Origin: Macrostomum lignano
Lineage: Eukaryota
DNA: 49,239 nt
Direction of reading: 5' to 3'
NCBI GenBank assembly: GCA_002269645.1
Contig: NIVC01001198.1
Span: 1 to 49,239 of the forward strand
Program-made: the position numbers and the translations under genes
The notes under the pieces: model-generated
Told to the model about the DNA's origin: nothing
Seen by the model: the letters and a program-made list of their open reading frames with translations, nothing else
Database searches by the model: none
In this document: piece by piece, positions 5,821 to 49,239 of the stretch
Layout: the number at the start of each line of letters is the position of its first letter
Position numbering within the stretch: position 1 is the first letter of the stretch

Positions 5821-6627
5821 GTAAGCCTCGCTAATTCTCCTCGCGCCGCCCCTTCTTCCCCCTCGATAAAGAAATTGCCTCAAGGCCCGCTGCTGGTCTA
5901 CCGTGGGGAGCTCCCGAGGCAGCGCAAACAGCCCTAGGGAGTTGGCCGGGACGGGACCGAGTCGCGGAGAGGGTCGGGGGAGAGAAGTGCGCTCGCTTGG
6001 CCAGTTAGGCCGAAACAGGGAGGCGAGGTTTTCAGTTTCCAGCTAGGGGGCTTCTAGTTAGCCTTCCCTGGTCAACCCCCACCGCCGAGCTTTGAACAGT
6101 CGATCGCCCACTCTGATGGCGCCTCGTCAATTTATCATCCAACACGCTGAGCTCACTCTCGCACTGTCTCGCCCACGCCTTCGTCAAGTGCCGCGTCCAG
6201 TTCGCACCAGCAGCAGCACCACTACCATTGAGCTGGCTCTTCTTCCTTTTTCGGCTTCTCTCCCCCGACCCCCGACTCGTCCTTCAATTCCCAATTTCAG
6301 CGATAATAGAAGCATAGCGCCAGACACAAACAGGGCTTATTTGAGCGTGTATAATGGCTAGATTAGGCCGGCTGAGACAGCGAAGGAATTGGAAAAGCCC
6401 CGATGGGGATAGGGGAGAGAACGGGAGTTGAGGAGTTGAGTGTCTCGTATGAATTTTAGGCTGGCTCCCAGCGTGTCCATCAGACTGAGAGTCCTGGGTG
6501 GCCTAGGCGTCGGCAAAGGGTGTGCTTCTTCACCCCGAATAACCCTTACTAGCTAAGAGTTGAATAGTGCAGAGAGAGCTTCAGAAAGACTGGGAGAAAA
6601 GTACCAGTATGTTTTTGTGTGGGGTCA

Positions 6628-11822: not shown

Positions 11823-12311
11823 GATTCAATTTCAGTTTTACTGTTGCATATTCAATGAAAAGTCACTGCCAATTTCGCATTTAACAGAAAAATATTTTAT
11901 CAGTCAGCAGGCAATTGCAAATTTGATTAATATTTTTCCATTGAATATTTTTTAGGAATTATTCAATGAATATTCAATAAGTCGGGGACAGACAGTGTAG
12001 GATAAGTGCGTGCTGCTTTCATTGATGCATTGAAAAGTTCATGTCACGCAAGGTTTTTGTTTTAAATAGCTCGTAAAATAGACACGTCTTCCGGATTTAA
12101 CTTAATCTAGCTCGTACGGCAAAGAAAGGAAACTTGCTAGAAAAGCTCATTAGCCTAATTAAGTCGCTACCTACTGCACTATTCGAGAAAATGTAACTTA
12201 AGAACTATGTGCTACTATTCGAAAGATCGATTATTTGATTTCAAAATCAACTGCATGTAAAGTAATAAAGCTAGGATGAGACAGGATAAGGGTTAGTAGA
12301 TACAGAGGTAA

Positions 12312-13370
12312 CGAAGGACTAGTAGGAGCTAATGGAGGACTGGGAGGAGCTAATGATGGACTAGTAGGAGCTAATGGTGGACTAGTAGGAGCTAATGGTG
12401 GACTAGTAGGAACTAATGAAGGACTAGTAGGAGTTAATGAAGGACTAGTAGGAGCTAATGAAGGACTAGTAGGAGCTAATGGAGGACTAGTAGGAGCTAA
12501 TGAAGGACTAGTAGGAGCTAATGAAGGACTAGTAGGAGCTAATGGAGGACTAGTAGGAGCTAATGAAGGACTAGTAGGAGCTAATGAAGGACTAGTAGGA
12601 GCTAATAAAGGACTAGTAGGAGCTAATGAAGGACTAGTAGGAGCTAATGAAGGACTAGTAGGAGCTAATGAAGGACCGGTAGGAGCTAAAGAAGGACTAG
12701 TGGGAGCTAATGGTGGACTAGTAGGAACTAATGATGGACTAGTAGGAGCTAATGATGGACTAGTAGGAGCTAATGAAGGACTAGTAGGAGCTAATGAAGG
12801 ACTAGTAGGAGCTAATGAAGGACTGGGAGGAGCTAATGAAGGACTAGTAGGAGCTAATGGAGGACTAGTAGGAGCTAATGAAGGACTAGTAGGAGCTAAT
12901 GAAGGACTAGTAGGAGCTAATGAAGGACTAGTAGGAGCTAATGAAGGACTAGTAGGAGCTAATGAAGGACTAGTAGGAGCTAATGAAGGACCGGTAGGAG
13001 CTAATGAAGGACTAGTGGGAGCTAATGGTGGACTAGTAGGAACTAATGATGGACTAGTAGGAGCTAATGATGGACTAGTAGGAGCTAATGATGGACTAGT
13101 AGGAGCTAATGAAGGACTGGGAGGAGCTAATGAAGGACTGGGAGGAGCTAATGAAGGACTGGGAGGAGCTAATGAAGGACTAGTAGGAGCTAATGAAGGA
13201 CTAGTAGGAGCTAATGAAGGACTAGTAGGAGCTAATGGAGGACTGGGAGGAGCTAATGATGGACTAGTAGGAGCTAATGAAGGACTAGTAGGAGCTAATG
13301 AAGGACTAGTAGGAGCTAATGGAGGACTAGTAGGAGCTAATGAAGGACCGGTAGGAGCTAATGAAGGACC
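12312..13370. repeat. 21-bp minisatellite GGACTAGTAGGAGCTAATGAA
   Basis: About 50 tandem units; source of the artefact GLVGANE ORF. Confidence 0.95.
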
Positions 13371-13834
13371 TAGGCTCTTGTTACGCCGGTTCTGGCAAGT
13401 CCATCAAGACTACATTAAAAACAGTAAATCTTGTTTTTCAGTCTACCATATTCTGTTGCACAGTCGGATGCGTACGCAAGAATCACCCAGAAAGTTTTTT
13501 ACTTACTAGTATTATACGTACTCGTAGTAAAATAAATGGCAAAATGCGAGCTCAAACATCTGGGACAAATCCTCAAAAACGTTTGAGCCGAAATATTGGA
13601 CACGGAAAAGACACCAATTTATTTGAGTGGGTGGGCGGCTTCGCGAGGGCTCTGATTGAATTATTCATTGCAGCTGCCCTGCCGCTGGTGCGTCTCACTT
13701 GCTCACATTGTTTCTGAGAGCTGAAGCCGCCGCTGCCGCCTCTGTCTCACCACAGTGCTGGCTGATGGCAAAGGAAAACTAACTAAACCAAAATCTATTT
13801 GCACTCGGAGGTCTCGTGCTGTATACTATTTTTA

Positions 13835-23985: not shown

Positions 23986-24273
23986 AAGTCGCACGTGTAC
24001 AAGAAAACTCTGCAGGCAGTCTGCTACCCAATCAGCTGTACAGTGCCGCACAGCTTTCAAGTTTGGTCGGCCACCAGTCCCACCTACTGTCACGAGTGCG
24101 AAGGCCTGCTGTGGGGCATCGCCCGTCAAGGCGTCCGCTGCAGCCAGTGCGGGGTTAAGACGCACGAGAAATGTAAAGACCTGCTGAATGCCGACTGTCT
24201 GCAACAGGCGGCTGAGAAATCCTCCAGACACGGAGCCGAAGACAAGTCGGCCGCGATTCGGCAAGCGATGCAG
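23986..24273 (+). CDS. unc-13: unc-13 C1 (DAG/phorbol ester-binding) domain exon
   Basis: [50 protein letters not shown] retains all Zn ligands of the Munc13 C1 domain. Confidence 0.97.
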
Positions 24274-24459: not shown

Positions 24460-25124
24460 AAGTAAATCTGGTCACTACCCACTGTCCTTCAGTAGGTCTG
24501 GTCACTACCCACTGTCCTTCAGTAGGTCTGGTCACTACCCACTGTCCTTCAGTAGGTCTGGTCACTACCCACTGTCCTTCAGTAGGTCTGGTCACTACCC
24601 ACTGTCCTTCAGTAGGTCTGGTCACTACCCACTGTCCTTCAGTAGGTCTGGTCACTACCCACTGTCCTTCAGTAGGTCTGGTCACTACCCACTGTCCTTC
24701 AGTAGGTCTGGTCACTACCCACTGTCCTTCAGTAGGTCTGGTCGCTACCCACTGTCCTTCAGTAGGTCTGGTCACTACCCACTGTCCTTCAGTAAGTCTG
24801 GTCACTACCCACTGTCCTTCAGTAGGTCTGGTCACTACCCACTGTCCTTCAGTAGGTCTGGTCACTACCCACTGTCCTTCAGTAGGTCTGGTCACTACCC
24901 ACTGTCCTTCAGTAGGTCTGGTCACTACCCACTGTCCTTCAGTAGGTCTGGTCACTACCCACTGTCCTTCAGTAGGTCTGGTCACTACCCACTGTCCTTC
25001 AGTAGGTCTGGTCACTACCCACTGTCCTTCAGTAGGTCTGGTCACTACCCACTGTCCTTCAGTAGGTCTGGTCACTACCCACTGTCCTTCAGTAGGTCTG
25101 GTCACTACCCACTGTCCTTCAGTA
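24460..25124. repeat. 30-bp minisatellite GGTCACTACCCACTGTCCTTCAGTAGGTCT
   Basis: About 22 nearly identical units. Confidence 0.97.
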
Positions 25125-25209
25125 TACACTAATAACCCTAGAATTTCATTTTAGAATCCTAAAAATTATCTGAAAAATGCGAAAAAATAACATATTTTGC
25201 ATCTTGCAG

Positions 25210-25511
25210 GAGAGAATGCAATCTAGAGAGCAAGCTCGACCAGAAGTATTCGAGCTCGTCCGTCGAGTATTCGGTGTCGACGAAGCGAGCCATCGGGAGC
25301 AGCTGCGCGCGGTACAACTCTCCATTCTAGAGGGCAGCAGCAACTGGAGCGCCAAGATTGCCATCACTGTGATTTGCGCGCAGGGTTTGATAGGCAAAGA
25401 TAAAACTGGCACCTCCGACCCCTACGTCACTGTGCAGGTGGGCAGGCTGAAGCGTCGAACAAAGACTGTTCCGCAAGAATTGAACCCAACCTGGAATGAG
25501 AAATTCTACTT
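25210..25511 (+). CDS. unc-13: unc-13 C1-C2B linker and first half of C2B
   Basis: [33 protein letters not shown]...LNPTWNEKF is Munc13 C2B; cag|...|gtgagt. Confidence 0.97.
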
Positions 25512-25591: not shown

Positions 25592-25633
25592 CGAGTGTCA
25601 CAACTTTTCCGACCGAATCAAAGTTCGAGTTTG
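25592..25633 (+). CDS. unc-13: unc-13 C2B short exon (ECHNFSDRIKVRVW)
   Basis: Near-identical to Munc13 ECHNSSDRIKVRVW; phases fit. Confidence 0.95.
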
Positions 25634-25717
25634 GTAAGTCGATTCCATTTTATTAAATGTACGAGCTGACTAAATGTTGATTATCAGGAGCTTGGAGCAG
25701 AAAGCAGTGTGTTACAA

Positions 25718-26308: not shown

Positions 26309-26436
26309 GGACGAAGACAACGATCTGAAGTCAAGAATTCGTCAACGACTCACCAGAGAGTCCGATGATTTTCTCGGTCAGACTCTGATCGAAGTTCGCA
26401 CTCTATCGGGCGAGATGGACGTCTGGTACAACCTGG
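26309..26436 (+). CDS. unc-13: unc-13 C2B loop-3 exon, variant A
   Basis: [42 protein letters not shown]; 128 nt; aag|...|gtaggt. Confidence 0.9.
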
Positions 26437-27702: not shown

Positions 27703-27830
27703 GGATGAGGACAACGACCTGAGGGCTCGAATCCGTTCAAAGTTAACGTCCGAGTCGGACGACTTTCTCGGTCAGACAATGATCGATGTGAGCAAATTGT
27801 CCGGCGAAATGGACGTCTGGTACACTCTCG
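27703..27830 (+). CDS. unc-13: unc-13 C2B loop-3 exon, variant B (mutually exclusive with A)
   Basis: [42 protein letters not shown]; 128 nt; cag|...|gtaggt; same phases as A. Confidence 0.9.
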
Positions 27831-28324
27831 GTAGGTTGCAAGTGGACCCAGCTTGAATCGGCTGTGTTGCTAAGAACCAACTATCGAAGTTTAGGCATTA
27901 TGGTTAGGCAGAAGTTTTAGTTAACAATACAAACTATTAAACACTTTGATGCTTCCTTAAAGCCTATTTACTATATTTGTTCTGTCATTTAATGTTGTAA
28001 ATATTTCTTACATTTTTATACATTGTCAAATATGCATGTAGCTACGCTAGGCAGTTGTTTTGCAACAAGACGACTGGTAAGGATATGAATGACATCTATT
28101 TTATGGAAATTTGTGTCAGGCTAGTATTTTATCTCGAAAAGCCTGAGAAATACATGTACTACATTGGAGACTAATTAGCAAGCGTGATTTTATAAAAACT
28201 TACTTATAACTTTCTACACATCCTGTTACATTATAAATGTTATAAAATATTTTATTGCTTGATACAAAACTTCGGAACTTGCTTAGAATCAGTGCAATAT
28301 TATTTCGTTTTCTACCGGTTTTTT

Positions 28325-29280
28325 TTGTGCAGCAGGATCACGCCAGATTCCAGCAGACCAGGGCGCTTCTTTCGTATTGCTGGGCGCAGCTTCTCCTGCA
28401 GAATCCAGTTGTAGTAGTCCCCATTGACGGTGGTTCCTTGTGGGACTGCCCAGTTCAGCAGGATTCCTTGGGAATCAAAAAACATGACGTGCATGATCTT
28501 TATCGCGCCCTGCTTCCTGATGCCCTTCTGAGGTCTTGGAGAATGTGCTGGAAGCCATTCGGCAGACTGGGCCTTTGTCTCAGGATCCCAGCTGTAAACC
28601 CACGTCTCGTCTCCAGCAACAATTCTTGATAGAAAATCCTCCCCTTCTCGATGGAACCGACGCAGGTGGCTGCTTGAAGCCAGAGTTCGCTGCATCTTTT
28701 GCTCACCTGTCAGCAGGTGTGGCACCCACTTGCAGAACTTTTTCTGTAGGAGAAGACGCTCAGTCAGAATAGTGTGGACGCTTCCTACTGACACACCAAC
28801 GTCTTCTGCCAACTCTTCGCAAGTCCGTCGCCGATCATCATCCAAGAGCTCTTGCACTTTCTTCACAACAGTCTCTTTGGTTGCAGTCATCGGCCTTCCA
28901 GAGCGGCCATTGTCCTCAACGCTCTCTCTTCCCTCAGCGAACAGCCGGTACCATTTTCGAACTGTCTGCTCAGTTGGTGCACAGTTGCCAAGCACTTGCT
29001 GAAGCTCCCTAAACATATCCGGTGGCTTTTTTCCTTGCAGAAACTGAAACTTCATCAAGCTTCGAACGTCATGCTTTGAAAATGATTCAGCCATGGCCAA
29101 GAAATTGAGTGGCAGCTGATAGAAATGTTCGCTGCTCTAACATAGTTGCAAACTGAGACTTAAAACCCTAGGAACGTTTAGGCCATAGACATAACTTGGT
29201 AAAATCGCTAAAATTCAGTTTACAACGCTTTCTAAAAATAAATGCCAAAGGACCGAAAAGAACTTTTTGAATAAACCTCG
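28325..29280 (-). mobile_element. mariner (Tc1/mariner) transposon, 3'-truncated, irritans/Hsmar2-like TIR
   Basis: The ORF at 28312-29100 has HTH regions, WVPHLL and IVAGDETWV, and ends at ILLH just before the second catalytic Asp. The 5' TIR reads TA|CGAGGTTTATTCAAAAAGTT on the minus strand at 29282-29261. No second TIR was seen. Confidence 0.92.
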
Positions 29281-29503
29281 TAGTATTTTTCCCAATTGTA
29301 AAGTTGCTAAACTTGGGAATCAAACTCCGATCAAACGCATTACAACTGATGTTCGGACATGCCCCGTATTACCTGTGCATTTTGAAACGTAATTAAGCCT
29401 CTAGAAAATCTGAAAAACTTCTCTTTGCTCCCAATGGTCCATACCTGTACAGAAAACAGTTGCGTTTTATTTTTTGCAATACGCTCGTAACTATTCACTT
29501 CAG

Positions 29504-29619
29504 AGAAGCGAACGGACAAGTCGCTGGTGTCGGGCGCTGTGCGATTGCACATCAGCGTGGAAATCAAAGGCGAAGAGAAGGTCGCGCCGTATCATGTGCA
29601 GTACACCTGCTTGCATGAG
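29504..29619 (+). CDS. unc-13: unc-13 end of C2B exon
   Basis: [39 protein letters not shown], conserved in Munc13. Confidence 0.97.
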
Positions 29620-30025
29620 GTGAGGCTCGATATTTGCATATTTTACTCGTTCAAACAATTTCTTTTCACTCGTTTAAAAATGGATTAAAAGTTAAAATGA
29701 TACCATTAGCTAAGGGAGATCGACAAACTGAGTTCTTCAAATTTGTCTGGTATATTTTCTCAAAACGGATTGCCAGATAAATATCTCTCCCTATCGTCTC
29801 AAGAACAATTTAAGAACGTTCTTAAGTCGTTATTTTATTGCCTGTTGAAATAAGATCTCTTAAAAGTCCATTTCGTGATATGCAAAGTAAATGCCTGTTG
29901 CTAGATATGTCTAGCTCGTATTTATATTTAATTAAAATATAGATGTCTTAAAACCTTAAAACAAGAGTCTCCAGGCATGACACTACACACTACGAGCGTA
30001 CACTATTCACGAACCAAACTTACAG

Positions 30026-30207
30026 AACTTATTCCACTACATGTGCGAGACATCGAAACAGGATGGTAAACAGGAAGTCCGACTGCCCAGACAAGCCATC
30101 GGACGAGGCGAGAATGCGTGGAAAATCTACTTCGAAGCTGAGATGCAAGAAATCGTGGACGAGTTTGCGATTCGATACGGCATTGAGAGCATCTATAGAG
30201 CGATGAC
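30026..30207 (+). CDS. unc-13: unc-13 C2B-MUN linker exon
   Basis: NLFHY...AWKIYF...[21 protein letters not shown]; cag|...|gtgagt. Confidence 0.96.
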
Positions 30208-31794
30208 GTGAGTGAAAAATGCTCATTTGTTTATTTAATCGCAGTGATTTGCTAATTAAGTTGGTTGAATACACTGTCTGACCGTGATGCTCTACATGTA
30301 TGCTTTGTTAAAATGCTTCGTACAATTATTTCCCTGTTTTGCGAAGCTATTTCATCTTGTCTAAACTTTCGATAGTACGTTTGGTAGCCACGCCATTTGA
30401 CTGTTGACCACTTGAATGCCACCGATCAAGTACATCTATCTACCTTGCCTTCTTACTTGCACGCCAGATTTCCCGTGTACATGACATGTTGGGCTTGTAA
30501 GGGTGCATCTTAAAACGAATTTAGGCAGTGATCCTTTGGTGAAAAAAATTTCTTCCAATATCTTAGAAACAAAAGTGCATCGTTTTCAGGAGAAGCAATC
30601 AATTTAATAAGCTAAGGAAGTTCACAATCGTTATACGAAAAATATGCAAGATTGACATTGAGTACTACAGTGTAATCTGGATGTTCCTGCCCTCTCGTTA
30701 ATTCCTCTCTCCCTCTTTCTTATCCTTATCCTGCATGAGTTCTGAGAACACTTGCTGTGTATATGAATGCTTTGTATTCTGTACAAATATTTCTATCCGC
30801 TGCCACTTTCATTCTGGGCGATGCGTCTATTGATCGATCCGTTATTATAAGACAGAATCCAGGGAGAGGGAGGAGGAGAGAGAGAAGGGGGAGCCAAGGC
30901 GCGGAAAGAATTTCCTGGTCAAATTTCTCCTCTGCTCAACCGCGCCCATAACAGTTCCTGTTCTCTCCTGACCGCTACAGCATCCCCTTTTTTCTGTTCA
31001 TTCTTTCTCCTCTCACCGCGCTTCTCCCTCTGTGATGCCCCGCAAGCAGCTGCAGCCTCGTTTTATCATTTATTCTTGGCCTATCGTCAGGCCTCTCAGA
31101 AATCTCTTGCACTCTGTCTCTCTCCCCATCGGAGCCACTTCAGTACCTCTTCTATAGCCGATCCATTGGTTGATTCGGGTTTCGCACTAGAAATGCAATA
31201 CTGCAGAAAAAACCGAATGTCAAACACATTCAACGTGTTTTACGTTCAGTTCAATTCATCTATACTGAACCCACTGCCAGGCGCTAGACAAAGGCTGCAG
31301 AGAAATCGTTAACAAAGATGACGATTCTGTGTAGTTTTTGCAACCCAATTATCTTGTATGCATTGAACTTCAATCGGGTTGGAGTAAAATTTTCAGTAGA
31401 ACTACTAGCAATCTAGTGCCCCTTTTGGGGCGGCCAATGATCAAGGGACGAAAATTATTTACGTGAATCCTTTTAAGAGACAAAGACAAATTTTCTTAAA
31501 AGCATTCATTCTTCAGTTTCGTAAATCACATTGTTCGAGAAAATTTATCAGGGACAAAGATTTTGGAGAGCTAACAAAAAATGAAATACACTGGTGGACA
31601 TTGAAGAGATCCACTACTACTGTTCAGTAGTGTATTATTGCACACTATTATTCCTTCGATATAGTGCGCAATTAAATAATATCGTTACCCGCTCGGGATG
31701 CAAGTTGCGTAACTTGCAGTTGCGATCGGAGAGAAAAAGAGGATACTTTTCAAAGTCCAGCGTTTATTTTTAAATAAGCTACATGTAGCTTCTG

Positions 31795-32170
31795 ACTACT
31801 CAGCTTTGACATCTCAGCAATTCCCCCCGTAAGCCTTGACATCTCAGCAATTCCCCCTGTAATGACTCGGGAGTCAGTATTGATTTTGCAGTGCGAAAAC
31901 GCTTGGCCCTCCAAGAAGGGTGAGAGTGCCTATATATATTTGGGCCCTCAGGCCTCAGCCAATCATGTGTGGCAACGTTGGGATAAAAGGCATAAAAGAG
32001 GAGAGGTAAGCCGTGCAGAGTACAGTAAAAGAGTACAGTGAGTGAGCACTCCGCACTGCTAGGCACCCCGTTTAACAACAACAATTGAGTGCAGGGCTGC
32101 GGCATGACACCCCATAAGCTGTGACTTCTCAGCAATTCTCCCGTAAGCCTTGACATCTCAGCAACTCCCC
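31795..32170. repeat. 30-bp tandem repeat TGACATCTCAGCAATTCCCCCCGTAAGCCT, split by a solo LTR
   Basis: About 2 units on each side of the insertion. Confidence 0.8.
31858..32109. mobile_element. putative solo LTR (252 bp)
   Basis: TGTAAT...ATGACA termini, CCCC target-site duplication (31854-57 and 32110-13), internal TATATATA; it interrupts a tandem repeat. Confidence 0.7.
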
Positions 32171-33024
32171 CCGTAATACTCAATGTCAGCAATACTAAAT
32201 GTGTTATGTGTAACGGTGGCGTCACTGGAGCAAATAGCGCATGCTGATGTACACTCAGCAACATGTTAAAGTTTCCACCCCAAGATCTGTTGGTCAACAA
32301 GTAGCAGCTTTAATTCAACTTAGCCATAAAAGCTCATTCACACTGCCCATCTGACTGATGAGCAAGCAAATCACACGACCAATGCACAAAGAAATCAAAT
32401 TTGATGTTAAGTTGTGTGATCACACAAAAAGGGCCTTATATGATAGTGGTGTGAACGAGCATAAACTTTCTAGTCTCTCCTCACCAGCCTAAGCTAGGTC
32501 TTGTTACGCAAAGTTCATCACCCGCAGTCGAGACGAAAACCGCGCGCGTGTAGTGTGAATTGCGTCAACTTGGAGCTGAAATCTGAGAACAGTTGACCAC
32601 TGGTTTCGGGGTGGTCACAAACTTTAATATGTTGCCGGGTGTACATTCAATGTACGCTGCCGTCTAACTATTTCTACCCCCAGTTTTGTGTACCCTCTCT
32701 CCCAGCCTCAGCGCGGGCTCTAATTGGCTAAAGGTTGATTTATATTCGCTGACCAACAAGAGTCAGCCAATTGTTTGGCAGTCCAATTTGTTTACGAAAA
32801 ATGACCAATCTGAGCCTCACCGTGCCAGTCTGTCTTGGCGAGCGTAGGAGACTGTCTGCCTGCGAGCTGCAACATGCACAGCAGCAGCAGCAGCAGCAGT
32901 TGCAGATTAATCCAGTTGAACCTAGACGGCGCAGCATAGCTGTGCCTAGCGTCGCATCTTCCGAGACCGAATCACCGTCGCATTCAACCTCGTCCCCGTT
33001 GCCGTTCAACTCTCCATCTTTCAG

Positions 33025-33334
33025 GCATTTCTCCTGTCTGACAACAAAATCGTTGTGCACCGGCGTGCCAGCCGTGATGTCCAATCTGCTTGCTAACATC
33101 AACGCATTCTATGCGCACAGCGCCACCGGGAATTCCGTCAGCGCTAACGACCGTTTCGCGGCGTCCAACTTTGGCAAAGAGAAGTTTGTGAAACTATTGG
33201 ATCAGCTGCACAACTCGCTACGAATCAGTTTATCAGTGTACCGAAACTCTTTCCCCGCCTCTCAACCTGAGAAACTGTTGGATCTGAAATCAACAGTGGA
33301 TCTGCTCACCAGTATTACTTTCTTCCGGCTCAAG
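33025..33334 (+). CDS. unc-13: unc-13 MUN-region exon
   Basis: HFSCL...[19 protein letters not shown]...[26 protein letters not shown]...[18 protein letters not shown]. Confidence 0.97.
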
Positions 33335-33737
33335 GTGAGATGCGTTTTGATTTGATTTGATTTTTGATTTTTGTTTTATTTTCAAGTATTATCAAGGTTT
33401 TTAGCTATAGGGCCTCAAAGACGGGGAAACGTCCTTAAGTTTCTGATTTGACTTGTAATCAATGTATACATACTCGTAGAATTCAGATTGAGGTGTCTAG
33501 CGGCCACAAATGCAAAAAAATCGAAGTGTCCGTTAGGAAAAATAGAATTGCCTCAATTTTAGGCGTAAACAAGTTGATGTGAATTTCGAAACAGATCTTT
33601 TTGTAGTCATACTCGTATATAAAATAAGTCTCGACAGACTTTTGTTCTTCTCCGGTCACTACGATTAAATTGAAGGGGTCTTTTAATTAATTAACTAGAA
33701 ACGAGAAAATAGCAATTCACTTTCTCCCAATTCGCAG

Positions 33738-34157
33738 GTTCAAGACGTAGGCAGCGTGCCTCGAGCGGGCAGCGTACTGAAGGAGTGCGCACTCAACTGC
33801 TTGAAAACCACGTATCAGTTTCTGTTTGAAAACTGCAACGAATTGCACCAGCGGGAGTTCCCAGCAGCAGCTGCGGCCGCAGCAACAGAGGGGGCGTCGG
33901 AGTCGGCTAAGTCGGGCCCTTCGCCGGACTCTCTGGACTTTTGGCACCGACTGATCGAGCTGGTGGTGTCGGTGATCGAGGAGGATCGAAACAGCTACGC
34001 CCCGGTGCTAAACCAGTTCCCTCAGGAGGTCCACATTGGCCAGCTGAGCGCCTCCGCAATGTGGGATCACTTTAGTCAGGATTTGATGTACGCTCTGCAG
34101 GAACACGAAGAGAAGAGGCCGTGCAAAACGTCCGAGTACATGAACCTGCTGTTTAAG
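33738..34157 (+). CDS. unc-13: unc-13 MUN (MHD1) exon
   Basis: LDFWHRLIELVVSVIEEDRNSY...QFPQE...YMNLLFK. Confidence 0.96.
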
Positions 34158-34483
34158 GTGGGCTTCTGTGGATTTAGATTTTTCCTTAATGATTTCTGCG
34201 CACTGTAAGTGTGACCTTTGAGCACAGAACTAGATTTGTTACTATCCTATTTTCAATTTGGCGTCTGTTTTGGGTTCGCATAAATTTTTCATTGGTTCGG
34301 AGCTTCTGTCTATGGCCAAATATGACAGATCGGTGGTCTCGTCTCGAAACTGGACCATCTTTGATCCATAGTGAATCAAGCCGTTTTGTTGTGCCAGCCT
34401 GAGTTACGTATTTATTATTTTTATGAAATCTCGTTATGCTTTGTCATAAGGCCTTAAATGATAATGTAAAAATTTCACTACAG

Positions 34484-34635
34484 GTGAAGTGGCTCTACAA
34501 CAAATACGTGGCAGACGCTCCGCCGCACAAAGGCTCCGTACCTGGCTATCCACTCTGGTTCCAGCCGTTCGTACTGCAGTGGCTAAGCGAGAATGATGAA
34601 GTCTCCATGGAGTATCTGCACAGCGCCTATGCTAG
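34484..34635 (+). CDS. unc-13: unc-13 MUN exon
   Basis: VKWLYNKYV...WFQPFVLQWLSENDEVS. Confidence 0.96.
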
Positions 34636-35207
34636 GTAAGGTTTTGAACTATATAGTTTGCAAGTCAGTTTCAGTTATTTCAACTTCTCACTAGATCATT
34701 TGAGAGGTTGCAGCGCACAGAATGAACAGCAGCGGTATTACTCGTAGATAACCCACCAAGACGAATGTCGACCCTCGGCTCACAAGGTGCCAGTCACGCC
34801 GATTCTTGAGCTCGCCCACGCTGATATGCGTAGACAGGCCCTGACTTTCTCGTCGTCTCGCATGTACACTCTCCGAGCCTTGGGGTAGTCCTCAATCGCA
34901 CCAGCCCTGGTCAATATTCGTTGCACCTCCCCAAATCTATTTACGAGCTATGTACTTGCATGCAATCGAATCTGGGTACTACGAGTATATAGCTGTGCCA
35001 CTCTCCCCCCCCCTCCCCGATTATAGACTTATCTTTGATTTTACTATTGAAGCCTCAATTTGCACAAGTGTATCATTCAAAATGAACATTTGAAATAACG
35101 AAACTCATTGTTTGTAGCGACTCACTTCTAATAAGACCCAAAATGACAACTTTTAAGTAAAAGTCGCGAATTTGTTTATGTAATATTGTTTTTTTCGCAA
35201 TCAACAG

Positions 35208-35553
35208 AGACCGGAAAGACAGCTTTCAAAAGAGCTCAGACCACGCACTGTTCAGCACGTCTGTTGTTGACGTATTTACTCAGCTCAACCAGTGCCTAGA
35301 TGTAGTGAAGAAGCTGGAATGTCCAGATCCAGCAGTTGAAGCCGCTTTCATGAGTCGATTCAGCGGCACAGTTGTCAAAGTTCTATTCGCGTACGCCAAC
35401 ATCATCGCTAAAGACTATGGCAACTTTACTAGCCAGTCTGGCAAAGCCTGCGTGCTTATGAACAATGTGCAGCAGGTTCGAGTGCAACTGGAGAAACTCT
35501 ACGAAGCCATGGGCGGCCAGGCCATGGAAGCTGAGACCAAGGACAAGCTACAG
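35208..35553 (+). CDS. unc-13: unc-13 MUN exon
   Basis: HALFSTSVVDVFTQLNQ...KKLECPDP...LMNNVQQVRVQLEKLYEAMGG. Confidence 0.96.
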
Positions 35554-35916
35554 GTAATAAATTTTTCAATTGCAAATTTTGTGTTTGCTTAATTGTAGCT
35601 TCTTTCGTGATTACGTGATAATTAGGACATTTCAAATAATAAAAAGCTTTAATGCTAAAAGAAAAAAATGACTACAAGTACAACATACAACAAGAACTAG
35701 TAGATATCGGCACCAAAAATGGAGACCGGACGGGAGTAATACTTCAGATCAAACCGTCCATTTCTTAGTCAACTGGTCCGACAAGTTATCGATCGCAGTG
35801 GGTTTAACTCGAAGCTTTACTTCTCGGCTCCACTCCGGCGCTTAAGCCCTTTTTCATTAGAAGACAAAAAGCAAAGTCTTTAGTGAAAACCCTCGAGACC
35901 CCTACAACCTCTGCAG

Positions 35917-36264
35917 GAGCTGCAAGATCGACTGAATACCGTACTGGACGATCTGGCGGCGAGATTCGTTGCTACAAAATCTAGCGAAATTGTCGCTGCA
36001 GTCCGTGAGGTCGGCTGCCTGCTGCACAAACACGTGCGCGGTGGAGCCGGCAGCAGTGGCGGTGGGTCAGGAAGCACAGATCCGCAGGCGGAGGCTGATA
36101 TGATACTGCGGCCACTGATGGAGCTTTTGGACTCGTCTCTGGGCATGCTGGCTGTCGAATGCGAGAAGGCAATTCTCAGGCGACTCTTGAAGGAGATGTG
36201 GCGTGTCACCGTGGCGGCTCTGGAGAAGGAAGTTGTGCTGCCACCAATCAGCGATCCTAGACAG
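35917..36264 (+). CDS. unc-13: unc-13 MUN (MHD2) exon
   Basis: LRPLMELLDSSL...CEKAILRRLLKEMW...VVLPP. Confidence 0.95.
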
Positions 36265-36490
36265 GTGAGCAGTTTTTAGAAGCGCTTAGTTACCGAGCAA
36301 ACTTTATATAAACAAAGAGGCAATGTCCCCTTTTTTAATTTAAAGTTTTACACCAAGTTTACAGAGCAAACTAATTTTACTTGAGCAGCATAACGTTTGC
36401 CACTTGATTGAGTTTTCAGCCAATCATGATTTTATGTTTAGGACGCAGCCTCAGAGCCACGGCTACTAGTCTTCCATAATCAAATTTCAG

Positions 36491-36634
36491 CTATTCCTCA
36501 ATCTGAGCATCCCAGCTAAGGCCAAAGTGGCCGGCGTTAGCCAAGGCCTGCTAAGCAACATCTCCAGCATATCAACCCAGGTGTCCAATGTAACATCCGT
36601 GCCAAATATTAGCAACGTGTCTAACCTGTTGCAG
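36491..36634 (+). CDS. unc-13: unc-13 MUN variable-loop exon
   Basis: tttcag|LFLNLSIPAKAKVAGVSQGLLSNISS...NLLQ|gtaaag; phase 0/0; lies at the position of the variable loop after VLPP. Confidence 0.7.
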
Positions 36635-37200
36635 GTAAAGCTAAGAGGCGCGGGATTACAGAAAATAGCGTTGCCGAACGTCGCACCTAGTCTTGCTCAC
36701 TTGATCCATGTTGTTTTGCACTTATGGAGATCGCAAATTTCCATAGATCTCTGGCTATTTATTTACTAACAGTAGCATCGAGAGATATACACAAATCTTT
36801 GCCAATCGGCGATCTTATCTACATGAATGTTGTGTCTTTAGTCATTTGATTTGTCTGTCGCCTTTAATCTCCTATTGCTTTCAGTTAAACTTTCGTCCAG
36901 CAGCTTGTATTTCAAGCAAATCCCTTTGCTTGCTTATGCTGTCTAGCATCCAACCCAGACCCTTAATATGAGTATAGTGCCATTTCTATTTTTTCGTTGC
37001 CGCAAATGCGCAAAATGTGCCGTTATTTTTCTATTTACGGTGTCTTTCTCATGAGTTAATCTTTATTATTGCACTATATTTCACCGTTTGTAGGAGTTTC
37101 GTTTGACACTACAATATTCATCCATTCTTGCATTCCAGCTACATGTCAGCGACAATAGCTTGCACTTTTAACCTTTTTAAATATCCTCTCCAATCAACAG

Positions 37201-37685
37201 GACACTCTATCAAAGGATCTAGAGAAGACTATGTCTCCCAGGCAGTGCGCAGCGATCCAGGTAGCCCTAGAAACTGTCCGGCAATATTTCCACGCTGGCG
37301 GCAACGGTCTAAAGCTGGCTTACCTGGAGAAGAGCGCCGAGTTGCAGTCGTTGCGCTACGCCTTGTCGCTTTACTCTCAGACGACCGATTCGCTTGTGAA
37401 AACGTTTGTAGCAACACAGGCTGGCCAGGACCGGCCGGCGGTAGACGAACCTGTCGGCGAGGTGTCAATCCAGGCGGATCTTTTCAGGCATCCTGGCTCG
37501 GGCGAGGTCAAGGTCACTGTTAAAGTCGTTGCAGCTAATAAGCTTCAATGGGACACCAGCTCAATGTTTCGACCGTTTGTTGAGGTTAACTTGATTGGGC
37601 CGCATCTGAGCAATAAGAAGCGCAAGTTTACCACGAAGTCCAAGAATAATTCGACATCGCCAAAGTACAACGAATCGTTCAGTTT
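37201..37685 (+). CDS. unc-13: unc-13 MUN end and first part of C2C
   Basis: SPRQC...[11 protein letters not shown]...[11 protein letters not shown]...[26 protein letters not shown]. Confidence 0.97.
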
Positions 37686-37736
37686 GTAAGAAAAGTTTTT
37701 TCTGTGCAAATTTTTCTGTTTTGATAGTTTATAAAC

Positions 37737-37978
37737 GGACCTTTGGAAACGTAGGGACCTTCGGAAACGTAGGGACCTTTGGAAACGTAGGGACCTTTGG
37801 AAACGTAGGGACCTTCGGAAACGTAGGGACCTTCGGAAACGTAGGGACCTTCGGAAACGTAGGGACCTTCGGAAACTTAGGGACCTTCGGAAACGTAGGG
37901 ACCTTCGGAAACGTAGGGACCTTCGGAAACGTAGGGACCTTCGGAAACGTAGGGACCTTCGGAAACGTAGGGACCTTC
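37737..37978. repeat. 18-bp minisatellite GGGACCTTCGGAAACGTA
   Basis: About 13 units in the last intron. Confidence 0.92.
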
Positions 37979-38079
37979 GCGATGTTCAAGACCTCTAGAA
38001 ACCATCAGGACCTACTGGATCTTCGGGAGCTTTGCTATTCGCTATTGGAACCTTATTTCAATAGAATTCATTCCCTCAG

Positions 38080-38381
38080 CATTCTGGGCACTATTGAGGA
38101 TCCCGAAGCATTCGAGCTGCAGATTAGCTGCAAAGATTATTGCTTCGCTCGAGATGACCACCTGATCGGCGTCACAGTGCTACAGATCAAGGATATCATC
38201 GAGCAAGGCAGCTGCGCCTGCTGGTGCCCTGGGCCGAAAGCTGCAGCTCGATGAGACCGGCTGGACAATCCTTCGAATTCTGTCGCAACGGCCTAACGAC
38301 GAGATTGCGGCCGAATTTGTTCGGCTGAAATCGGAGCAACGGCAGGACAATCCGCACGGCCTTTGGCTGGGCAAAAGTTAG
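38080..38381 (+). CDS. unc-13: unc-13 terminal C2C exon, with a frameshift at about 38228
   Basis: [14 protein letters not shown]...GSCACWC, then in a shifted frame [36 protein letters not shown]...stop TAG at 38379-81. Confidence 0.92.
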
Positions 38382-40269
38382 CTGAAATAATTCCTCACAT
38401 TACACAGGGGTCCTGTCTAAATGCACAACTAAAGCACTCGAAAGCATATTTGTTCATGGGTGCTGGCTTTTTCGTCATCTATTATTTTATTTCCTGGATA
38501 TTTAGTAGAGGATGATTAAAACACAAAATGATGACGAATTAGCCATACATGAACATGCAATTAAGGTGCTTTTGTATCAGTCGAATCTTTGATTCATTTT
38601 TTATCCCCTAATTCGAATCTAGATTGAAACTTGCAAACAGAATTGTGCAAAACATGTTTAATACCTAATAGATTGAATCAATTTGTTGAACACTATATTT
38701 TTATTCATTTTTATATACTACTGTTTTAAGCATGCATCGAGATCGTGTTGTTATTCCTTTGCAAAACCATCTAATAAACACAATGCGCATATACTGTGGG
38801 TTCTACCAGTTCGTAATCCACTCGATTGCAGGTGGCTCTTTGAGTTGCTTTGTGTGTTCTGTAGCGTCAGGACAGAGTAGAGTATAGTTTGTCATATTGG
38901 TTACCATAAAGTTCTGATGATCTACTTGAGAAAATTGCAACGAACCCGTTTTTGTGCATGTGCTATACAGCTACTGCTAAAGGTTAATTGCTTTTTCAGA
39001 CGAAAGTAAATATATTTTCGTAAATTGTCACGAGGTGCCAAATAAGCAAGTCAGCAATACATAACAACAATAGCTCGCAAAAATATTTTCAATATAATTG
39101 TAGTTAATTTGATGAAAGCATGTATGCGTAATTAAAATCCGTCAATACTCGCATAATTATGATTTTTGCTTTTAAACTAGCGCAATTTGTCTATTTAACT
39201 TCTTTTGTAATGATTGCTTCGAAAAGGCAGATTTTTTATTCCTACTTGCAGCATCCACTTGTGTTTTTTTACAGACTACTATGTGTAGTAATATATTCAA
39301 TACAAAGCTGCTTATTCTCGCCTTTTGTTTTAACCAAACTCTTAAGCTAATAATCGGTTGCCCATTTACATGTAGCTTTTTGGTGTTATACTGAGCTACT
39401 TCGGCTCTTTTGGCTATGCACTATGCACTGTATATGGATGCATGTACGTATACTCGTAAACTACGTGTTCATTTCTAAAAATAGATCGCTGCACAAACTT
39501 CAGTAAGATCAAATTGCTTTATTATAACTGCCATACAAATAATCCATCAAAAATAAAATTGATTAAGAAATTTATTTATAAGCAATTAAATTGAAAATTA
39601 ATTTTACCATGTTTCAACGATTGCGTCAGCTTTTTGTCGATTTCTATTTCATGGTTGACTTCAACTTCGTCTCTCTCTCTCAGGGGCGTCTCCACTGGTG
39701 GGACAGGTACATGTCCCCCAGTAAAAGCTATAGGGGGGGGGGGAATGCCAATGCATTGTCCCCCCCCACCCCACCAAGGACCACCTAGCAGTATATCCTG
39801 CTAGTGGTCCTTGCACCCACCTTTGTGACCCGTTGTAAAATCGATAGTTTTGCTTCAGGGCGCCAAAATGTAGCGCATTTGGCTCCAAAATGAGTGCTAA
39901 CATGCAACACCGATTCTCAAAATAGTGTACATGTAAGAATTTAGTCAATGTAAATGTAGAATTCCTGGCTTGCCTCTTCTACAACCATAAAATCTATGGC
40001 GACGCGCGTTGATTTTTTAGTCTAAATACGAGACGATGTAACTCGAATGCTGAAATGGAGTGCATTTTCTTTAACGTTTACGACGTAGATGGCACTATAC
40101 AAAAAAATCAAATGCATACTACAGCAAGGAAAATATTTTTAAAATTAAACTAAAAGCATTTTTGCAACATAACATCTGAGTAGACCTTACACCAAATATC
40201 TTTTCAATTGAAAATTTGTGAGCTTCATAGCACACCCCGAATGCTCAAATGGAGAGATTTCTTCGTGCT

Positions 40270-40510
40270 TTTTTATCTGTTGTGGAGACGCATCGTTCGC
40301 CACAGCGGCAAAAAACACCTGGGCTTGTTTGGCAACTCTGGCGACCTCAGCCTCTTTTTCTCGTCTGTTGAAAGCACAGAAAGAGGTGGATTCGAGCGTT
40401 GTCAGCATATTGAAGACCGAGATGCTGACTGTGTCTGCTGACGTATCAGCGCGGACCTGACATGCCACGGCGTAGACGCGCGCTGCCAGCAGTGGTTCAT
40501 CACACCAGCA
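40270..40510 (+). mobile_element. degenerate LINE reverse-transcriptase fragment, copy 1
   Basis: Nucleotide similarity to 41290-41570 (GTTGTCA..TGAAGACCGAG.TGCTGACTG..CGGACCTGACATG). Confidence 0.5.
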
Positions 40511-41289
40511 GTCTGGTGCTCCATGTGGAGAGAGGAAAACCTTTCATATGAGGGGCCAGGCCCGAACCCATTGATCAATCCAAACTAGATGTACATGTAT
40601 AGCTGTTCTACGTGTTCTCTATACACTACATAGCTATCTGAACCATATGTCATCACAGCCTTAAAAGGATCCCCTGATAAAAATCCGTCAGTATGATCCC
40701 GAAGTTCCCGATTTGTGCCCAAGCAGATTCCTATTGGCTATTCGGCTGAATGCTGCTCCCCGCTAGCTCCAACCCTTGATACTCATCCCAGGCGGGGCTC
40801 CGGCCTCGCCAGGTCTGGTCATACCGTAGATCCAGGTTCGCCAGGTCACAGAGTGGTGGCAGCCAGTGGGTCATGCAATAACCCGATGATCAATATTTGC
40901 ACCTTAGCTATCGATGGGGCACATTTGGGGATCCTTTACCCCGTCTCTAATATAGCACTACCAAAAAGTTATCAATAATGCATGGGCGGGACAACCTGAA
41001 AGCGATCTGTCGGTCATAGTCTGGTCATAGACGGCTGGCAGCTATCCCTATTTTTTTGCATATTGTGTGCACTATCATATGAGGGGCTGCTGACGTCATC
41101 GTACGATCTGATCCTTCCCCCATGAGAAGACGGTTCACTAGTAGGGCGATTACATACATGTAAATCATCATCAGTTCGACACTTCATCAGGAGTTCTGCA
41201 GGGCGACACTTTGGCGCCGTTTCTCTTCGTGCTGCTGCCACTGGGTGCTTCGGACCGCAGTCTCCTCGACTAACGACGGCTTCCTGCAC

Positions 41290-45540: not shown

Positions 45541-48500
45541 TGTTGTAGGGGTCTGTCTCTCAGTTTAAGAATCTCACCGCTGTTACCAAAACTGTTGTAG
45601 GGGGGTATTTATGGAACTCTTGGGATTTCTGAAAGATAGTATAATTTTATTACTAATAGGAGTAAGCCAAGGGTTGCTCCTGGTGGCGTGAGTGTCCGAG
45701 CGGCAAGACACTGTCTAAAGGTTAAACTGTCCGAGGGGGGGGCTACGCGGCGGATCAGAGTTGCCTGGGGAATTATCGCACGATGGGAATTTCTAATAGC
45801 TAATAAGGAATGATTTCATGGGGAAGAGTTCACTTAATGGAATCGTTAAGGGGGGGGGCTAAGATTTCTAATAGTTAAACTTCAAAGTAGGGGAACGAAA
45901 TACCAAGTCAGTTGGGAGTTAGAGTTGGGCCAGATAACTGGGCGACAGTAGGTCTGGGTAGGGAGTTGGCTGAACTCCAGGTCGAATTCTGGGGTCTGGG
46001 GGTTAGGGAAGGAAAGAGAGGTGAAGCTCTTGGTCACTAGGGGATAGGGGATGAGGTAATCACTGAGCGTGTCTGCAGGGTTGGAGGGGGGGAAAAGCTG
46101 TATGCTTATAGCTGGACAGATCCTTCGTGAGGAGAGGGGAGAGGCTGTACGCTTCGGCTAAACAGGCCTTGGGAAAGGGCTGAACACCTAAATAAAGAAC
46201 AGTGAGTCAGGCAGTGCCCAATTACAACCTTTGTATTAGCCAACCTCTTAAAGGAGAGTGGGCCACTCGAGGAGGAAGAAGAAGTCTCTCCTGATGTTAC
46301 AATCGCTCGCTTATATAGTATATTTTAACAAAATGTCAGACAATTTTAAACAAACATTTTACTAAATAACATTTTTTTACTAATATTCAAGTGCGCATTT
46401 ATATTTTTAAGAAAAAGAAAACATTATACAAGCTCACATATTTTATGATATTGAAGGCAGAAATTTAGTCGTGAAGGCAACGAAGAATAAGGTATTAAGA
46501 TGCATTGCTATAATAAACTGCCTGCCTCAACTGGCCTTCCTACAATAAATTTTTAAAACAAGATACGCGAGTGCGAAAATTTATTAAACAGGTAAATGTA
46601 TTATTGCAAACAGATAAATGTACTATTGCAGAAAAATAATTGTTCAGTTCACACAGTTCACTCAAATGAAGCGAAATTCTTCAGGTAGCCGGTCCGGGTA
46701 TGGCCATCGGCACTTATAACCAAGCCACTAAACTTCTTTGACGACGTTCTCAATGTTGTACTCACGATGTTCTCGATTTAAATCGCTCAACGCGTACACA
46801 GTGGTGCGTCGCCAGGCAGCAAAGGGCCTGATTCAGCGGCATTTGGCGCAACATGCGCAGAGCGGGCCGAATGTCCTCGCGCTGAGGGAAATCGCGCCCG
46901 TCAGGTCGAAAGCGAGCCACCCGAATTAGATACAATTTCAGCGTGGTGACGTGATGACGGAATTTGGCTCGTTGGTAGTCGGGCAAGTTGGCCACTACAT
47001 TGTTGTAATACTCGCCGAGGTTTTAAGGCGGCTGAGGCTGGGCTCGCTGAGCTGGTTCGGCCATCAGAGGCGGAATCTCAGCCTTAGACAATTCGCTCTT
47101 GACAATCGGGTCGGTCAAAGATCTGTACCGTGGCTGATGCTGCGACTGCATACTGTAATCTTCAGGCGGCTTTAGCGATCGGCGATCGGCTAGTGGGTGA
47201 CGGTGGGCCAGTTTGTGGGCCAAGACGACCGGACTTCACTATGTGCGGCGCCTCCTTCAGGGAAATCACTTTTGATCGATTGCTACCGGGGGGCTGACGT
47301 TGCACGGCCTTAGGGTCGAGGGGAACTGGGGCGTCAGCTTGCTTTTGCAAAAGCTGGGCACGCTTCTTGGGCGTAGCTGCAGGGGGCGGTTTAGTGACGA
47401 CTGAAGCTACTTTTGACTTGTGGCACGGTAAGTTGGGCCTAGTGGCTTGCCTAATTGGCGCTGGCAGTTCATTCTCATCGTTGAACTCACTATCGTCGCT
47501 ATCACTTAGGGATAATTCGTCTTGTAGACGTTTGAGTTCTTCGGGATTCATGACGGATTGCAAGGTATAATTCGGATTGATAGCGGGAAGATAAAAGTCG
47601 AGTTGACAGTTAGTGTTGTGCAACCAAAAGCTTTTGTATTTACTATCCTCTTAAGTCTGTTATTTGATACTTCTTTGTTTTCATGACCCACCTCAATTTC
47701 TGTGTTCTTTGTGCTCTCATTCTTCTCTGGATCGATAATTTGAGGGGTTCTTTGTGCATAGCTAGGGTCTGGGCGAGGGCTTCTTGTGTTCAAAATTTGG
47801 GGTTTGCCAGGCGAAGGGGGACGGCGAGAGAGGGGTAGAAAAGCGTAGACGGGCTTAATATTCTAGATTGCGCAAGAATCTTACTGCTAATAGTAGGCGG
47901 TCTAGATGACAGTTGCAACGGTGTTTATTTTGGGAGGGGTGTCTTAAATTGTAGGGATGACGGTGTGGGGGTTCGGGATCTCGCGGGGCAGAAGAGGGGG
48001 GTTGGAGCTGGGGGGCAGGAAAGGGGGGTTGGAGCTGAGGGGCAGAAGAGGGGGGTTGTGGCTGAGAAAGCTCTTCGTTCGGGGCCTCAATCTCTGAGTC
48101 ATTGGTCATTTCATTCTCTTCCTCTGTCTGGGCTTCACTCCATTCTTCTGGCTGGATTTCATTGTCTTCGTCTCCTAACTCTTTGTTCTCTGCTTCTCTA
48201 ATTTGGCATCTCCAATTAATTTCTTCCTCATCAGATTCTTCTTCAGATTCAACTGGTTCGGGCAGGATTAATTTTTGGGAATTTTGGCGGGGTTGGCCTT
48301 CCTTAATTACAGGTTGTCTCTTAGGTTTAGTAGAGGTGGGAATTGGAGCGGGAGTGGGAACGGGAGCGGGATTAGAGGCGGAATCAAGGGCATCTCGCTG
48401 GCCTTCCTTAGTGATTCGCTCTGCAGTAGAATTTGGGACTGGGGTTAGATTGTCTTGATGCACGAGCATTTCTTTTCCTACTAATTCTCCTTCTTCTTCT

Positions 48501-49239
48501 TTCTGGACTTTGAAAACCACTTCTGATAGTTGGGCTAAAACTCTAAAGGCGGATCTCTTCTTTCGGTGGAACTTGTGGGATTCTTCGCTATCTAGCTGGG
48601 GGTTATTAATCAGTGCAAGGCAACCTATAGGGATTCTAGGGGGTAGCTTGTTAGTTTCAGCAGCGACTTGTCTTTTCTCTACTACTTTTTCCAACTTCTT
48701 CTTGACTATCTTATGAGCTTCCTCTAATCTTTCGGCATGCTTAGTGATGTAGGCGGGATAATCAGCGTGTTCTGCTATACTTCTGATCTGAGTGTCTTGA
48801 GGTAAGGTGGCTTCTCTGCCAAATAATAGGAAGTGAGGGGAAAAACCTGTGGTTGAATTGGGGCTGGTGCGGACTGCTACTAAGGCTGCGGGAATTAATA
48901 AATCCCAATCACCGTGATCCTTATTGATCAAGCAGGTGATGATTGACTTGACTTGCTTATTGAAACGTTCAACTAGTCCATTAGATTGGGCATGGTAGGG
49001 GTAGTGAAGGTGTGGCAAATATTATAAAGTTCGCAAAAAGCTTTAAATTGTTTGCTGGCGAAAGTTTTTCCATTGTCTGTGTGGATCCAGGTGGGCTGTC
49101 CATATTCTGCTACTATTCGTTCAAGTAGTATCTTGATGACTGTGTCCGATTTTTGGTTTCTAATGGGAAAAGCGAAGGGGTATCTAGTTGTGCTATCAAC
49201 ACTGTTAAAACATATTTATGACCTCGTTTGCTTTCTTTT
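45541..49239 (-). mobile_element. Ty3/Gypsy LTR retrotransposon, 3' part (integrase, extra ORF, probable 3' LTR at about 45541-46300)
   Basis: Integrase motifs in the minus-strand ORFs. TGTTGTAGGGG at 45541 reads as an LTR end (...CTACAACA), and the region shares the strand composition bias of the internal part. The inner LTR boundary and PPT were not resolved. Confidence 0.8.
47855..49239 (-). pseudogene. Gypsy pol integrase with C-terminal extension, about 3 frameshifts, runs off the window
   Basis: SKRGHKYVLT.VDSTTRYPFAFP...IHTDNG...F...YHAQSNGLVERFN...WDLLIPAAL.AVR...TTGFSPHFLLFGRE are rve integrase motifs. Confidence 0.92.

Follow-up and report, generated by a model that had tools for sequence, protein, structure and literature searches.

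Alternative promoters give rise to Unc13 isoforms in Drosophila (Unc13A/B) and in mammals (ub/bMunc13-2), and these isoforms retain the C1-C2B-MUN-C2C arrangement. Munc13-4 and BAIAP3 are priming factors with a MUN domain and no C1 domain, and to our knowledge MUN-C2C alone has been known only as a laboratory construct. The present analysis concerns an Unc13 gene of the flatworm Macrostomum lignano, which is carried on the + strand of contig NIVC01001198.1 (GCA_002269645.1, assembly Mlig_3_7). The whole contig, 49,239 nucleotides (nt) in length, is the window to which positions refer. In the intron that separates the C2B and MUN parts of this gene, the first MUN-side exon has an open 75-codon extension, which forms the start of a GenBank gene model, Mlig034388, comprising MUN and C2C and lacking both C1 and C2B. 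The best reading of the evidence, which we hold tentatively and at somewhat below even confidence, is that transcription does begin in the intron and that the mRNA is translated from an ATG at 32801 to give a lineage-specific MUN-C2C isoform.

The alternative-promoter isoforms UNC-13L and UNC-13S(MR) of C. elegans both contain C1 and C2B (PMC11991699). These two domains inhibit each other and in doing so set the probability of release as well as short-term plasticity; the engineered MUNC2C, a minimal fragment, rescues release only in part (PMC11991699). The M. lignano short model would resemble the alternative-promoter isoforms in that one gene would be read from different starts, with largely disordered, isoform-specific N-termini placed on a common C-terminal priming module. 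It differs from them in starting downstream of C2B, at a modelled 5′ end of approximately 32692 that rests on RNA-derived gene models; it would lack both sensors, and with them the C1-C2B module that the other isoforms have in common. In domain content it equals MUNC2C. However, MUNC2C is a laboratory construct, whereas the M. lignano model adds a leader of 75 amino acids (aa) and starts its Unc13 sequence at HFSCL, approximately 115 aa before the Pfam MUN domain. Munc13-4 and BAIAP3 differ from it in being the products of separate genes with a C2-MUN-C2 layout, whereas the window protein is of the Unc13A/B/C type; the entry 9la9 (‘Protein unc-13 homolog D’) was a distant match. If the short isoform exists, it would represent evolution’s use of the ‘minimal primer’ as a natural, sensor-less counterpart of engineered MUNC2C, and would extend the known alternative-promoter theme of Unc13. 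The question can be tested in a flatworm with working transgenesis.

The short gene models and the canonical junction

The extension is not new as a sequence, being already the start of a public gene model. The GenBank coding sequence (CDS) BOX15_Mlig034388g1 (PAA70914.1, P0227; 819 aa) has the range 32801-38254, starts with MTNLSL and reads through the acceptor at 33024. The sequence of its locus agrees with the window base for base over 22801-48254. Its first part is the extension itself (32801-33024, +), from ATG to acceptor, which is joined unspliced to HFSCL, the beginning of the first MUN-side exon (33025-33334, +; ending in FFRLK). The remaining exons, at 33738-34157, 34484-34635, 35208-35553, 35917-36264, 37201-37685 and 38080-38254 (all +), encode the full Pfam MUN and C2C, with P0227 100% identical. 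In P0227, Pfam recognizes the MUN domain in full (2-473 of 473) together with C2, and no C1. The product of a second genomic copy, BOX15_Mlig034388g2 (PAA62114.1, P0346; 898 aa, 5′-partial; NIVC01001971.1), likewise contains MUN and C2 only and has the same unspliced read-through. The g2 CDS starts at the equivalent of 32692, which places the beginning of the transcript model approximately 335 nt upstream of the acceptor. Neither GenBank record has an annotated gene over the C1 and C2B exons. Both products carry the label ‘hypothetical protein’, and neither a mention of Mlig034388 nor its reading as an Unc13 isoform was found in the literature searched or in the paper supplements.

The upstream part of the canonical gene ends with the last C2B-MUN linker exon (30023-30207, +), which was placed by alignment with rat Munc13-1, is identical in g2 and ends in the AC of a Thr codon. 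In the intron that follows (30208-33024, +; donor gtgagt at 30208), the last 224-335 nt are the disputed segment. The canonical splice joins the AC before gtgagt (30207/30208) to the G after tttcag (33024/33025), an acceptor that fits both the cis motif and the spliced leader (SL) trans-splice motif, and gives AMT followed directly by HFSCL. This junction is collinear with rat Munc13-1 and with many relatives including M. lignano paralogues. The protein has MUN followed by a C-terminal C2, as found by Pfam and by alignment to the rat Munc13-1 structures 7t7c and 5ue8, with C1, C2B and the direct linker-MUN junction upstream; it is 55-64% identical to animal Unc13 of other phyla and 100% identical to P0227. 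Judged from its sequence, it is an Unc13A/B/C-type orthologue.

According to the mechanism that we favor, an alternative mRNA of Mlig034388 would start inside the C2B-MUN intron, at or just upstream of approximately 32690, beside an element resembling a miniature inverted-repeat transposable element (MITE). Since a transcript initiated in the intron has no upstream donor, the acceptor at 33024 would not be used in cis, and the first MUN exon would be lengthened at its 5′ end by the last ~335 nt of the intron. A Q/S/P-rich, presumably disordered leader of 75 aa, translated from ATG 32801, would be added to complete MUN-C2C without C1 and C2B, while full-length C1-C2B-MUN-C2C would still be produced from the same locus by way of the 30207-33025 junction. 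The start of transcription and the translation are putative, as would be any function, whether a constitutively primed, MUNC2C-like activity or phosphorylation at RRxS motifs. The short isoform may have lost autoinhibition and may be under the control of protein kinase A (PKA) or of phosphorylation more generally. The more ambitious proposal is that a natural MUN-C2C isoform, made from an intronic and possibly transposon-adjacent promoter and bearing a young RRxS leader, escapes control by diacylglycerol and by Ca2+/phosphatidylinositol 4,5-bisphosphate as well as C1-C2B autoinhibition, and is tuned by expression or phosphorylation instead; this we consider doubtful.

The extension, its leader and the comparison of two copies

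The original prediction, which was made from the letters of the window, described an open frame from 32753, an ATG at 32801 beginning a 75-aa peptide, and direct fusion of that peptide to HFSCL. All of this was borne out. Upstream, the frame is closed by an in-frame TGA (32750-32752, +), which g2 bypasses through a 1-nt indel; from 32753 it is open through the acceptor AG (33023-33024) into exon 33025-33334. The extension is rich in Q, S and P and includes a (CAG)7 run at about 32879-32899. Two PKA-type RRxS motifs had also been claimed, and the consensus is indeed present at aa 16 (RRLS, 32846) and at aa 42 (RRRS, 32924).

The putative 5′ leader of the short transcript (32692-32800, +), which begins where the partial g2 CDS begins, has no ATG. 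The ATG at 32801 is the sole one in 32684-32805, and hence the first of the modelled transcript. Its context is cgaaaaATGa, with A at -3, and the leader contains no GT[AG]AG donor. The lone ATG, the A at -3 and the donor-free leader are mildly favorable to translation from 32801. ATTGG at 32723, a TATA-like motif at 32741 and CCAAT at 32767 and 32783 were considered as promoter elements; no role could be assigned to them, as all lie downstream of the modelled 5′ end.

The MITE-like element (32247-32646, no strand assigned) is approximately 400 bp long, has inverted-repeat ends of ~28-55 nt and was recognized by a repeat search and a blastn self-match. No other copies were seen in the few loci compared. 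Its end lies approximately 45 nt upstream of the 5′ end modelled for the short transcript, and the element could be either a promoter donor or a break point of transcript assembly. Rfam and tRNA scans of the intron revealed no noncoding RNA or tRNA gene that would explain the coverage.

The Mlig_3_7 assembly contains mostly three homeologous copies per locus, with single-nucleotide polymorphisms at 1.9-2.4% overall and 1.1% in CDS (PMC10733133). The third homeologue expected on this basis was not found among annotated proteins; two copies were found. Their ORF-style products, when looked up as exact sequences, gave no match. Positions 29281-41047 of the window were aligned with the g2 locus (L003) and substitutions and indels were counted. 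Noncoding sequence (8,879 nt) had 74 substitutions, or 8.3 per kb, and 28 indels (3.2 per kb). The confirmed MUN-C2C exons together with two upstream exons (2,664 nt) had 8 substitutions (3.0 per kb), of which 4 were synonymous and 4 not. There were none (0 per kb) in the seven C1, C2B and linker exons (1,179 nt), and their identity between the copies indicates that the full-length gene is strongly constrained and has not been split.

In the 224 nt of the extension there were 4 substitutions (17.9 per kb) and one in-frame 3-nt indel of CAG. All four substitutions (CTC>CTG, CTG>CTT, AGA>CGA and CCG>CCT) are synonymous in the frame of the open reading frame (ORF), and the AGA to CGA change sits in the second RRxS motif. 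In the other five frames the same changes would give 0-2 synonymous ones (P = 0.0037 conditional on four changes; P = 0.0015 with transversions only). Just before the ATG the copies differ by indels of 1 nt (32771) and 3 nt (32698), and indels that break the frame are confined to this upstream part. These differences would form the pattern of a coding first exon with a noncoding leader, which, with four events, is suggestive but not decisive.

Competing explanations of the short models

What argues for a real intronic start is contiguous intronic coverage at one intron only, the others being spliced, together with copy differences that respect the frame and a clean leader. The value of the first of these depends on how the gene models were made. 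For the Mlig_3_7 annotation (Wudarski et al., 2017; PMC5730564), RNA-seq mapping allowed up to 1,000 multi-mappings. StringTie models and a de novo transcriptome were merged by TACO at an isoform-frac of 0.75, by which isoforms at least 0.75 of the major one were retained; TBONE then cut the models at SL and poly(A) peaks, TransDecoder called the longest ORFs, and transcripts overlapping repeat annotations were taken out of the GenBank deposit (PMC5730564). By this record, contigs derived from RNA extend over 32692-33024 and the exon without a break. It is not independent proof of a transcription start or of translation. The original prediction had made its case depend on exonic coverage upstream of 33025, and exon-like RNA support does exist there, by way of transcript-derived models in two copies. 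All downstream introns of the short model are spliced out, which shows that it does not represent general pre-mRNA.

The evidence for a sensor-less Unc13 protein, rather than for a by-product of annotation, is only moderate. That the models are such a by-product is the main rival explanation and a serious possibility, though somewhat less likely than the intronic start. The locus would then make full-length Unc13 only: a fragmentary contig took up unspliced intronic reads and broke at a repeat, a chance ORF reached back to ATG 32801, and the extension is ordinary intron. This account gains from the removal of repeat-overlapping transcripts from GenBank, which can explain the missing full-length model; because the N-terminal exon contains tandem repeats, that model may have been filtered out. 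It has more difficulty with the fact that seven other introns are spliced out cleanly and this one alone is retained in part. Intronic coverage that is unbroken over 335 nt, with no assembled canonical junction, would also seem to argue for something beyond pre-mRNA noise.

A number of observations weigh against the intronic start, and several of them are what a by-product of annotation would lead one to expect. The RNA support is second-hand, consisting of gene models from longest-ORF calling. The g1 and g2 models are not independent, since the mapping placed reads at multiple sites and a single de novo transcript can align to both copies. The modelled 5′ end, ~45 nt from the MITE-like element, adjoins a repeat, where assemblies tend to break. 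The same pipeline has given an artefactual N-terminus elsewhere in this gene family, since the paralogue model P0349 (Mlig003781g1; L005 6001-8307) begins with an out-of-frame artefact. Its N-terminus, MRSSTLSATIFPIESKFEF, represents two C2B exons read out of frame from an out-of-frame ATG and joined straight to the EKRTDKS exon, both alternative C2B exons being skipped; this longest-ORF artefact is now in UniProt. If the Mlig034388 short models prove to be of the same kind, they would serve as a warning that longest-ORF calling on fragmentary transcripts can place the start of public M. lignano models, and of UniProt entries based on them, within introns.

The rate of change of the extension also counts on this side. 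Between the copies it diverges no more slowly than intron does, which sets it apart from all bona fide exons. The result of a Poisson comparison of coding with neutral evolution depends on the rate assumed: the likelihood ratio is ~2.6-4 if synonymous sites mutate at the intron rate, falls to ~0.13-0.26 if they behave as in true exons, and is ~17 or more if the local rate is left free. Ordinary intron does not readily account for four of four substitutions being synonymous in the ORF frame only, for an indel within the extension that keeps the frame when those just upstream do not, or for the absence of upstream ATGs and the good start context.

The open frame by itself is not beyond chance. 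At least 91 open codons lie upstream at 4-6% of random positions in the repeat-rich window, and in the introns of these loci 306 frames run for 60 codons or more without a stop. Of the eight acceptors in the MUN-C2C part, six are preceded by 7-19 open codons and the one at 38080 by 157, owing to an 18-nt tandem repeat. Vertebrate genomic ORF-style predictions (P0199, P0211) have 60-93 open codons upstream of the equivalent exon. ORF statistics in the M. lignano genome are inflated by many intronic tandem repeats (37721-37990, 12280-13506, 24462-25151, 6815-7175 and others), in which either strand can be read over great lengths without a stop, as in (GTFGNV)n and (NEGLVGA)n.

A codon-usage model was built from 1,526 codons of the full-length paralogue, and intronic frames served as the comparison. 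By this model the extension scored -0.04 bits per codon, and -0.17 once the CAG run was left out. The mean for conserved exons was 0.17 (minimum -0.04), the N-terminal exon scored 0.36, and intronic open frames averaged -0.37, with 12% of them scoring at least as high as the extension. On this measure the extension is ambiguous, and its borderline score adds to the case for ordinary intron.

Nor has the extension been found elsewhere. An exhaustive HMMER search of 1.84 billion representatives gave no homologue, and Pfam scans gave no match for the extension, for the antisense 120-aa ORF or for the 166-aa minus-strand ORF. The top match of the exhaustive search, P0121 (two stretches), is actually a duplicated MUN segment. 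A word-index protein search missed the 100%-identical P0227 when queried with the extension or with extension plus exon, and returned it for a longer, spliced MUN-C2C query; its negatives for short or low-complexity queries carry no weight. P0011, which that search gave with 89% coverage, was a spurious alignment. The M. lignano paralogue Mlig001537/Mlig003781 has nothing similar, its frame closing 9 codons upstream of the acceptor; in Opisthorchis viverrini homology begins precisely where the acceptor lies, and upstream of it 27 codons are open before a stop. Since neither the paralogue nor O. viverrini has a counterpart, the extension is at most young and specific to this paralogue. Conservation of the frame in relatives, which had been looked to as support, was found in g2, with its in-frame CAG indel and synonymous changes, whereas the frame is closed or lacking in the paralogue and in O. 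viverrini. What stands of the internal promoter first proposed is the exact match to a transcript-derived CDS in two copies, a frame kept with synonymous changes, and the position of the first ATG; fast evolution, borderline codons and absence from the paralogue and Opisthorchis detract from it.

It is also conceivable, though we judge it quite unlikely, that the intronic promoter is real and that the extension is not protein. The RNA would be trans-spliced at 33024, or the leader would be a 5′ untranslated region, and MUN-C2C would be made from the first in-frame Met of the exon. Roughly 30-39% of the genes of M. lignano are SL trans-spliced. The SL has ATG at its end, and the motif of trans-acceptors, [T/C]TNCAG (PMC8629364), is matched by tttcag at 33019-33024. 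In a species that uses an SL, an unpaired TTTCAG acceptor without a cis donor would be expected to undergo trans-splicing; the extension would then be lost, which bears on the favored reading as well. The fast nucleotide evolution of the extension also suits noncoding sequence. On the other side, TBONE cuts at SL read peaks and left the model uncut here, so that no strong SL signal was recorded at 33025. Moreover, an SL joined at acceptor 33024 would place its terminal ATG outside the Unc13 frame, and the synonymous-only pattern is left unexplained.

A second model, put forward in the original prediction with an insert of 86-88 aa, uses an alternative 3′ splice site to join donor 30207 to the extension and would place ~80-88 aa between C2B and MUN. 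In the window copy three acceptors, AAG before 32761, CAG before 32767 and CAG before 32782, are phase-compatible with donor 30207/30208; the first two were those proposed. Their phase holds in the window copy and is lost in g2, where, for want of the T at 32771, reading from 32761 or 32767 leaves the frame of the extension and soon meets a stop, within a few codons. Only CAG at 32782 is in frame in both copies, and it is without support for use. AAG makes a poor acceptor, purines predominate in the tracts before 32767 and 32782, and all confirmed acceptors here end in CAG. A Hymenolepis weldensis prediction (KAM3188267.1, P0153) has a 35-aa micro-exon at the same AMT-HF junction; it is predicted, separate and unrelated in sequence to the extension. 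No annotated isoform has such an insert, and paralogues show AMT joined directly to HFSCL. With these points the model is weakened to the extent that we consider it very improbable. Gene fission into two genes was ruled out, as the donor and acceptor are intact and the C1 and C2B exons are identical in both copies.

Other features of the locus

Upstream of the disputed intron the gene includes a GC-rich N-terminal exon of 991 codons (2962-5934, +), which contains the tandem repeats mentioned above. The C1 exon (23986-24270, +), aligned to Munc13-1, and the C2B-side exons (25216-25506, 25593-25634 and 29494-29619, +) are all 100% identical in g2, and none is part of the short model. Two 126-nt versions of one exon, at 26310-26435 and 27704-27829 (+), are also 100% identical in g2 and likewise not part of the short model. 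From their sequences they look like mutually exclusive exons altering part of the C2B domain. The pair is found in paralogues as well, and some database predictions (P0228, P0230) hold both in tandem.

Within the C2B intron, a remnant of a mariner/Mos1-type transposase (28306-29280, -; Pfam Transposase_1 and HTH_48) is present in the window copy only, with an empty site in g2. Farther downstream, a cassette exon at 36491-36634 (LFLNLSIPAKAKVAGVSQGLLSNISSISTQVSNVTSVPNISNVSNLLQ) is present and open; it is skipped in both annotated Mlig034388 proteins and included in paralogue proteins. At 38219-38230 (deletion at 38225) the window copy is without 2 nt (GC) that are present in g2, and the frame is shifted. 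The annotated g1 protein consequently ends at CPGPKAAAR, and the conserved C-terminus runs on in the +1 frame to 38371; the C-terminus of the g2 protein (P0346) is intact. The 2-nt deletion could be an indel introduced by the assembly or a mutation at an early stage in the loss of one homeologue.

What is a single exon in M. lignano (33025-33334) is divided among three in Opisthorchis viverrini Unc13 (L001 27814-35327) and is one exon in Schistosoma curassoni, which points to gain or loss of introns within flatworms. At the end of the contig, a 387-aa ORF (47855-49018, -) has weak integrase-like Pfam matches below curated cut-offs (Integrase_p58_C, rve_3) and is probably a retroelement remnant.

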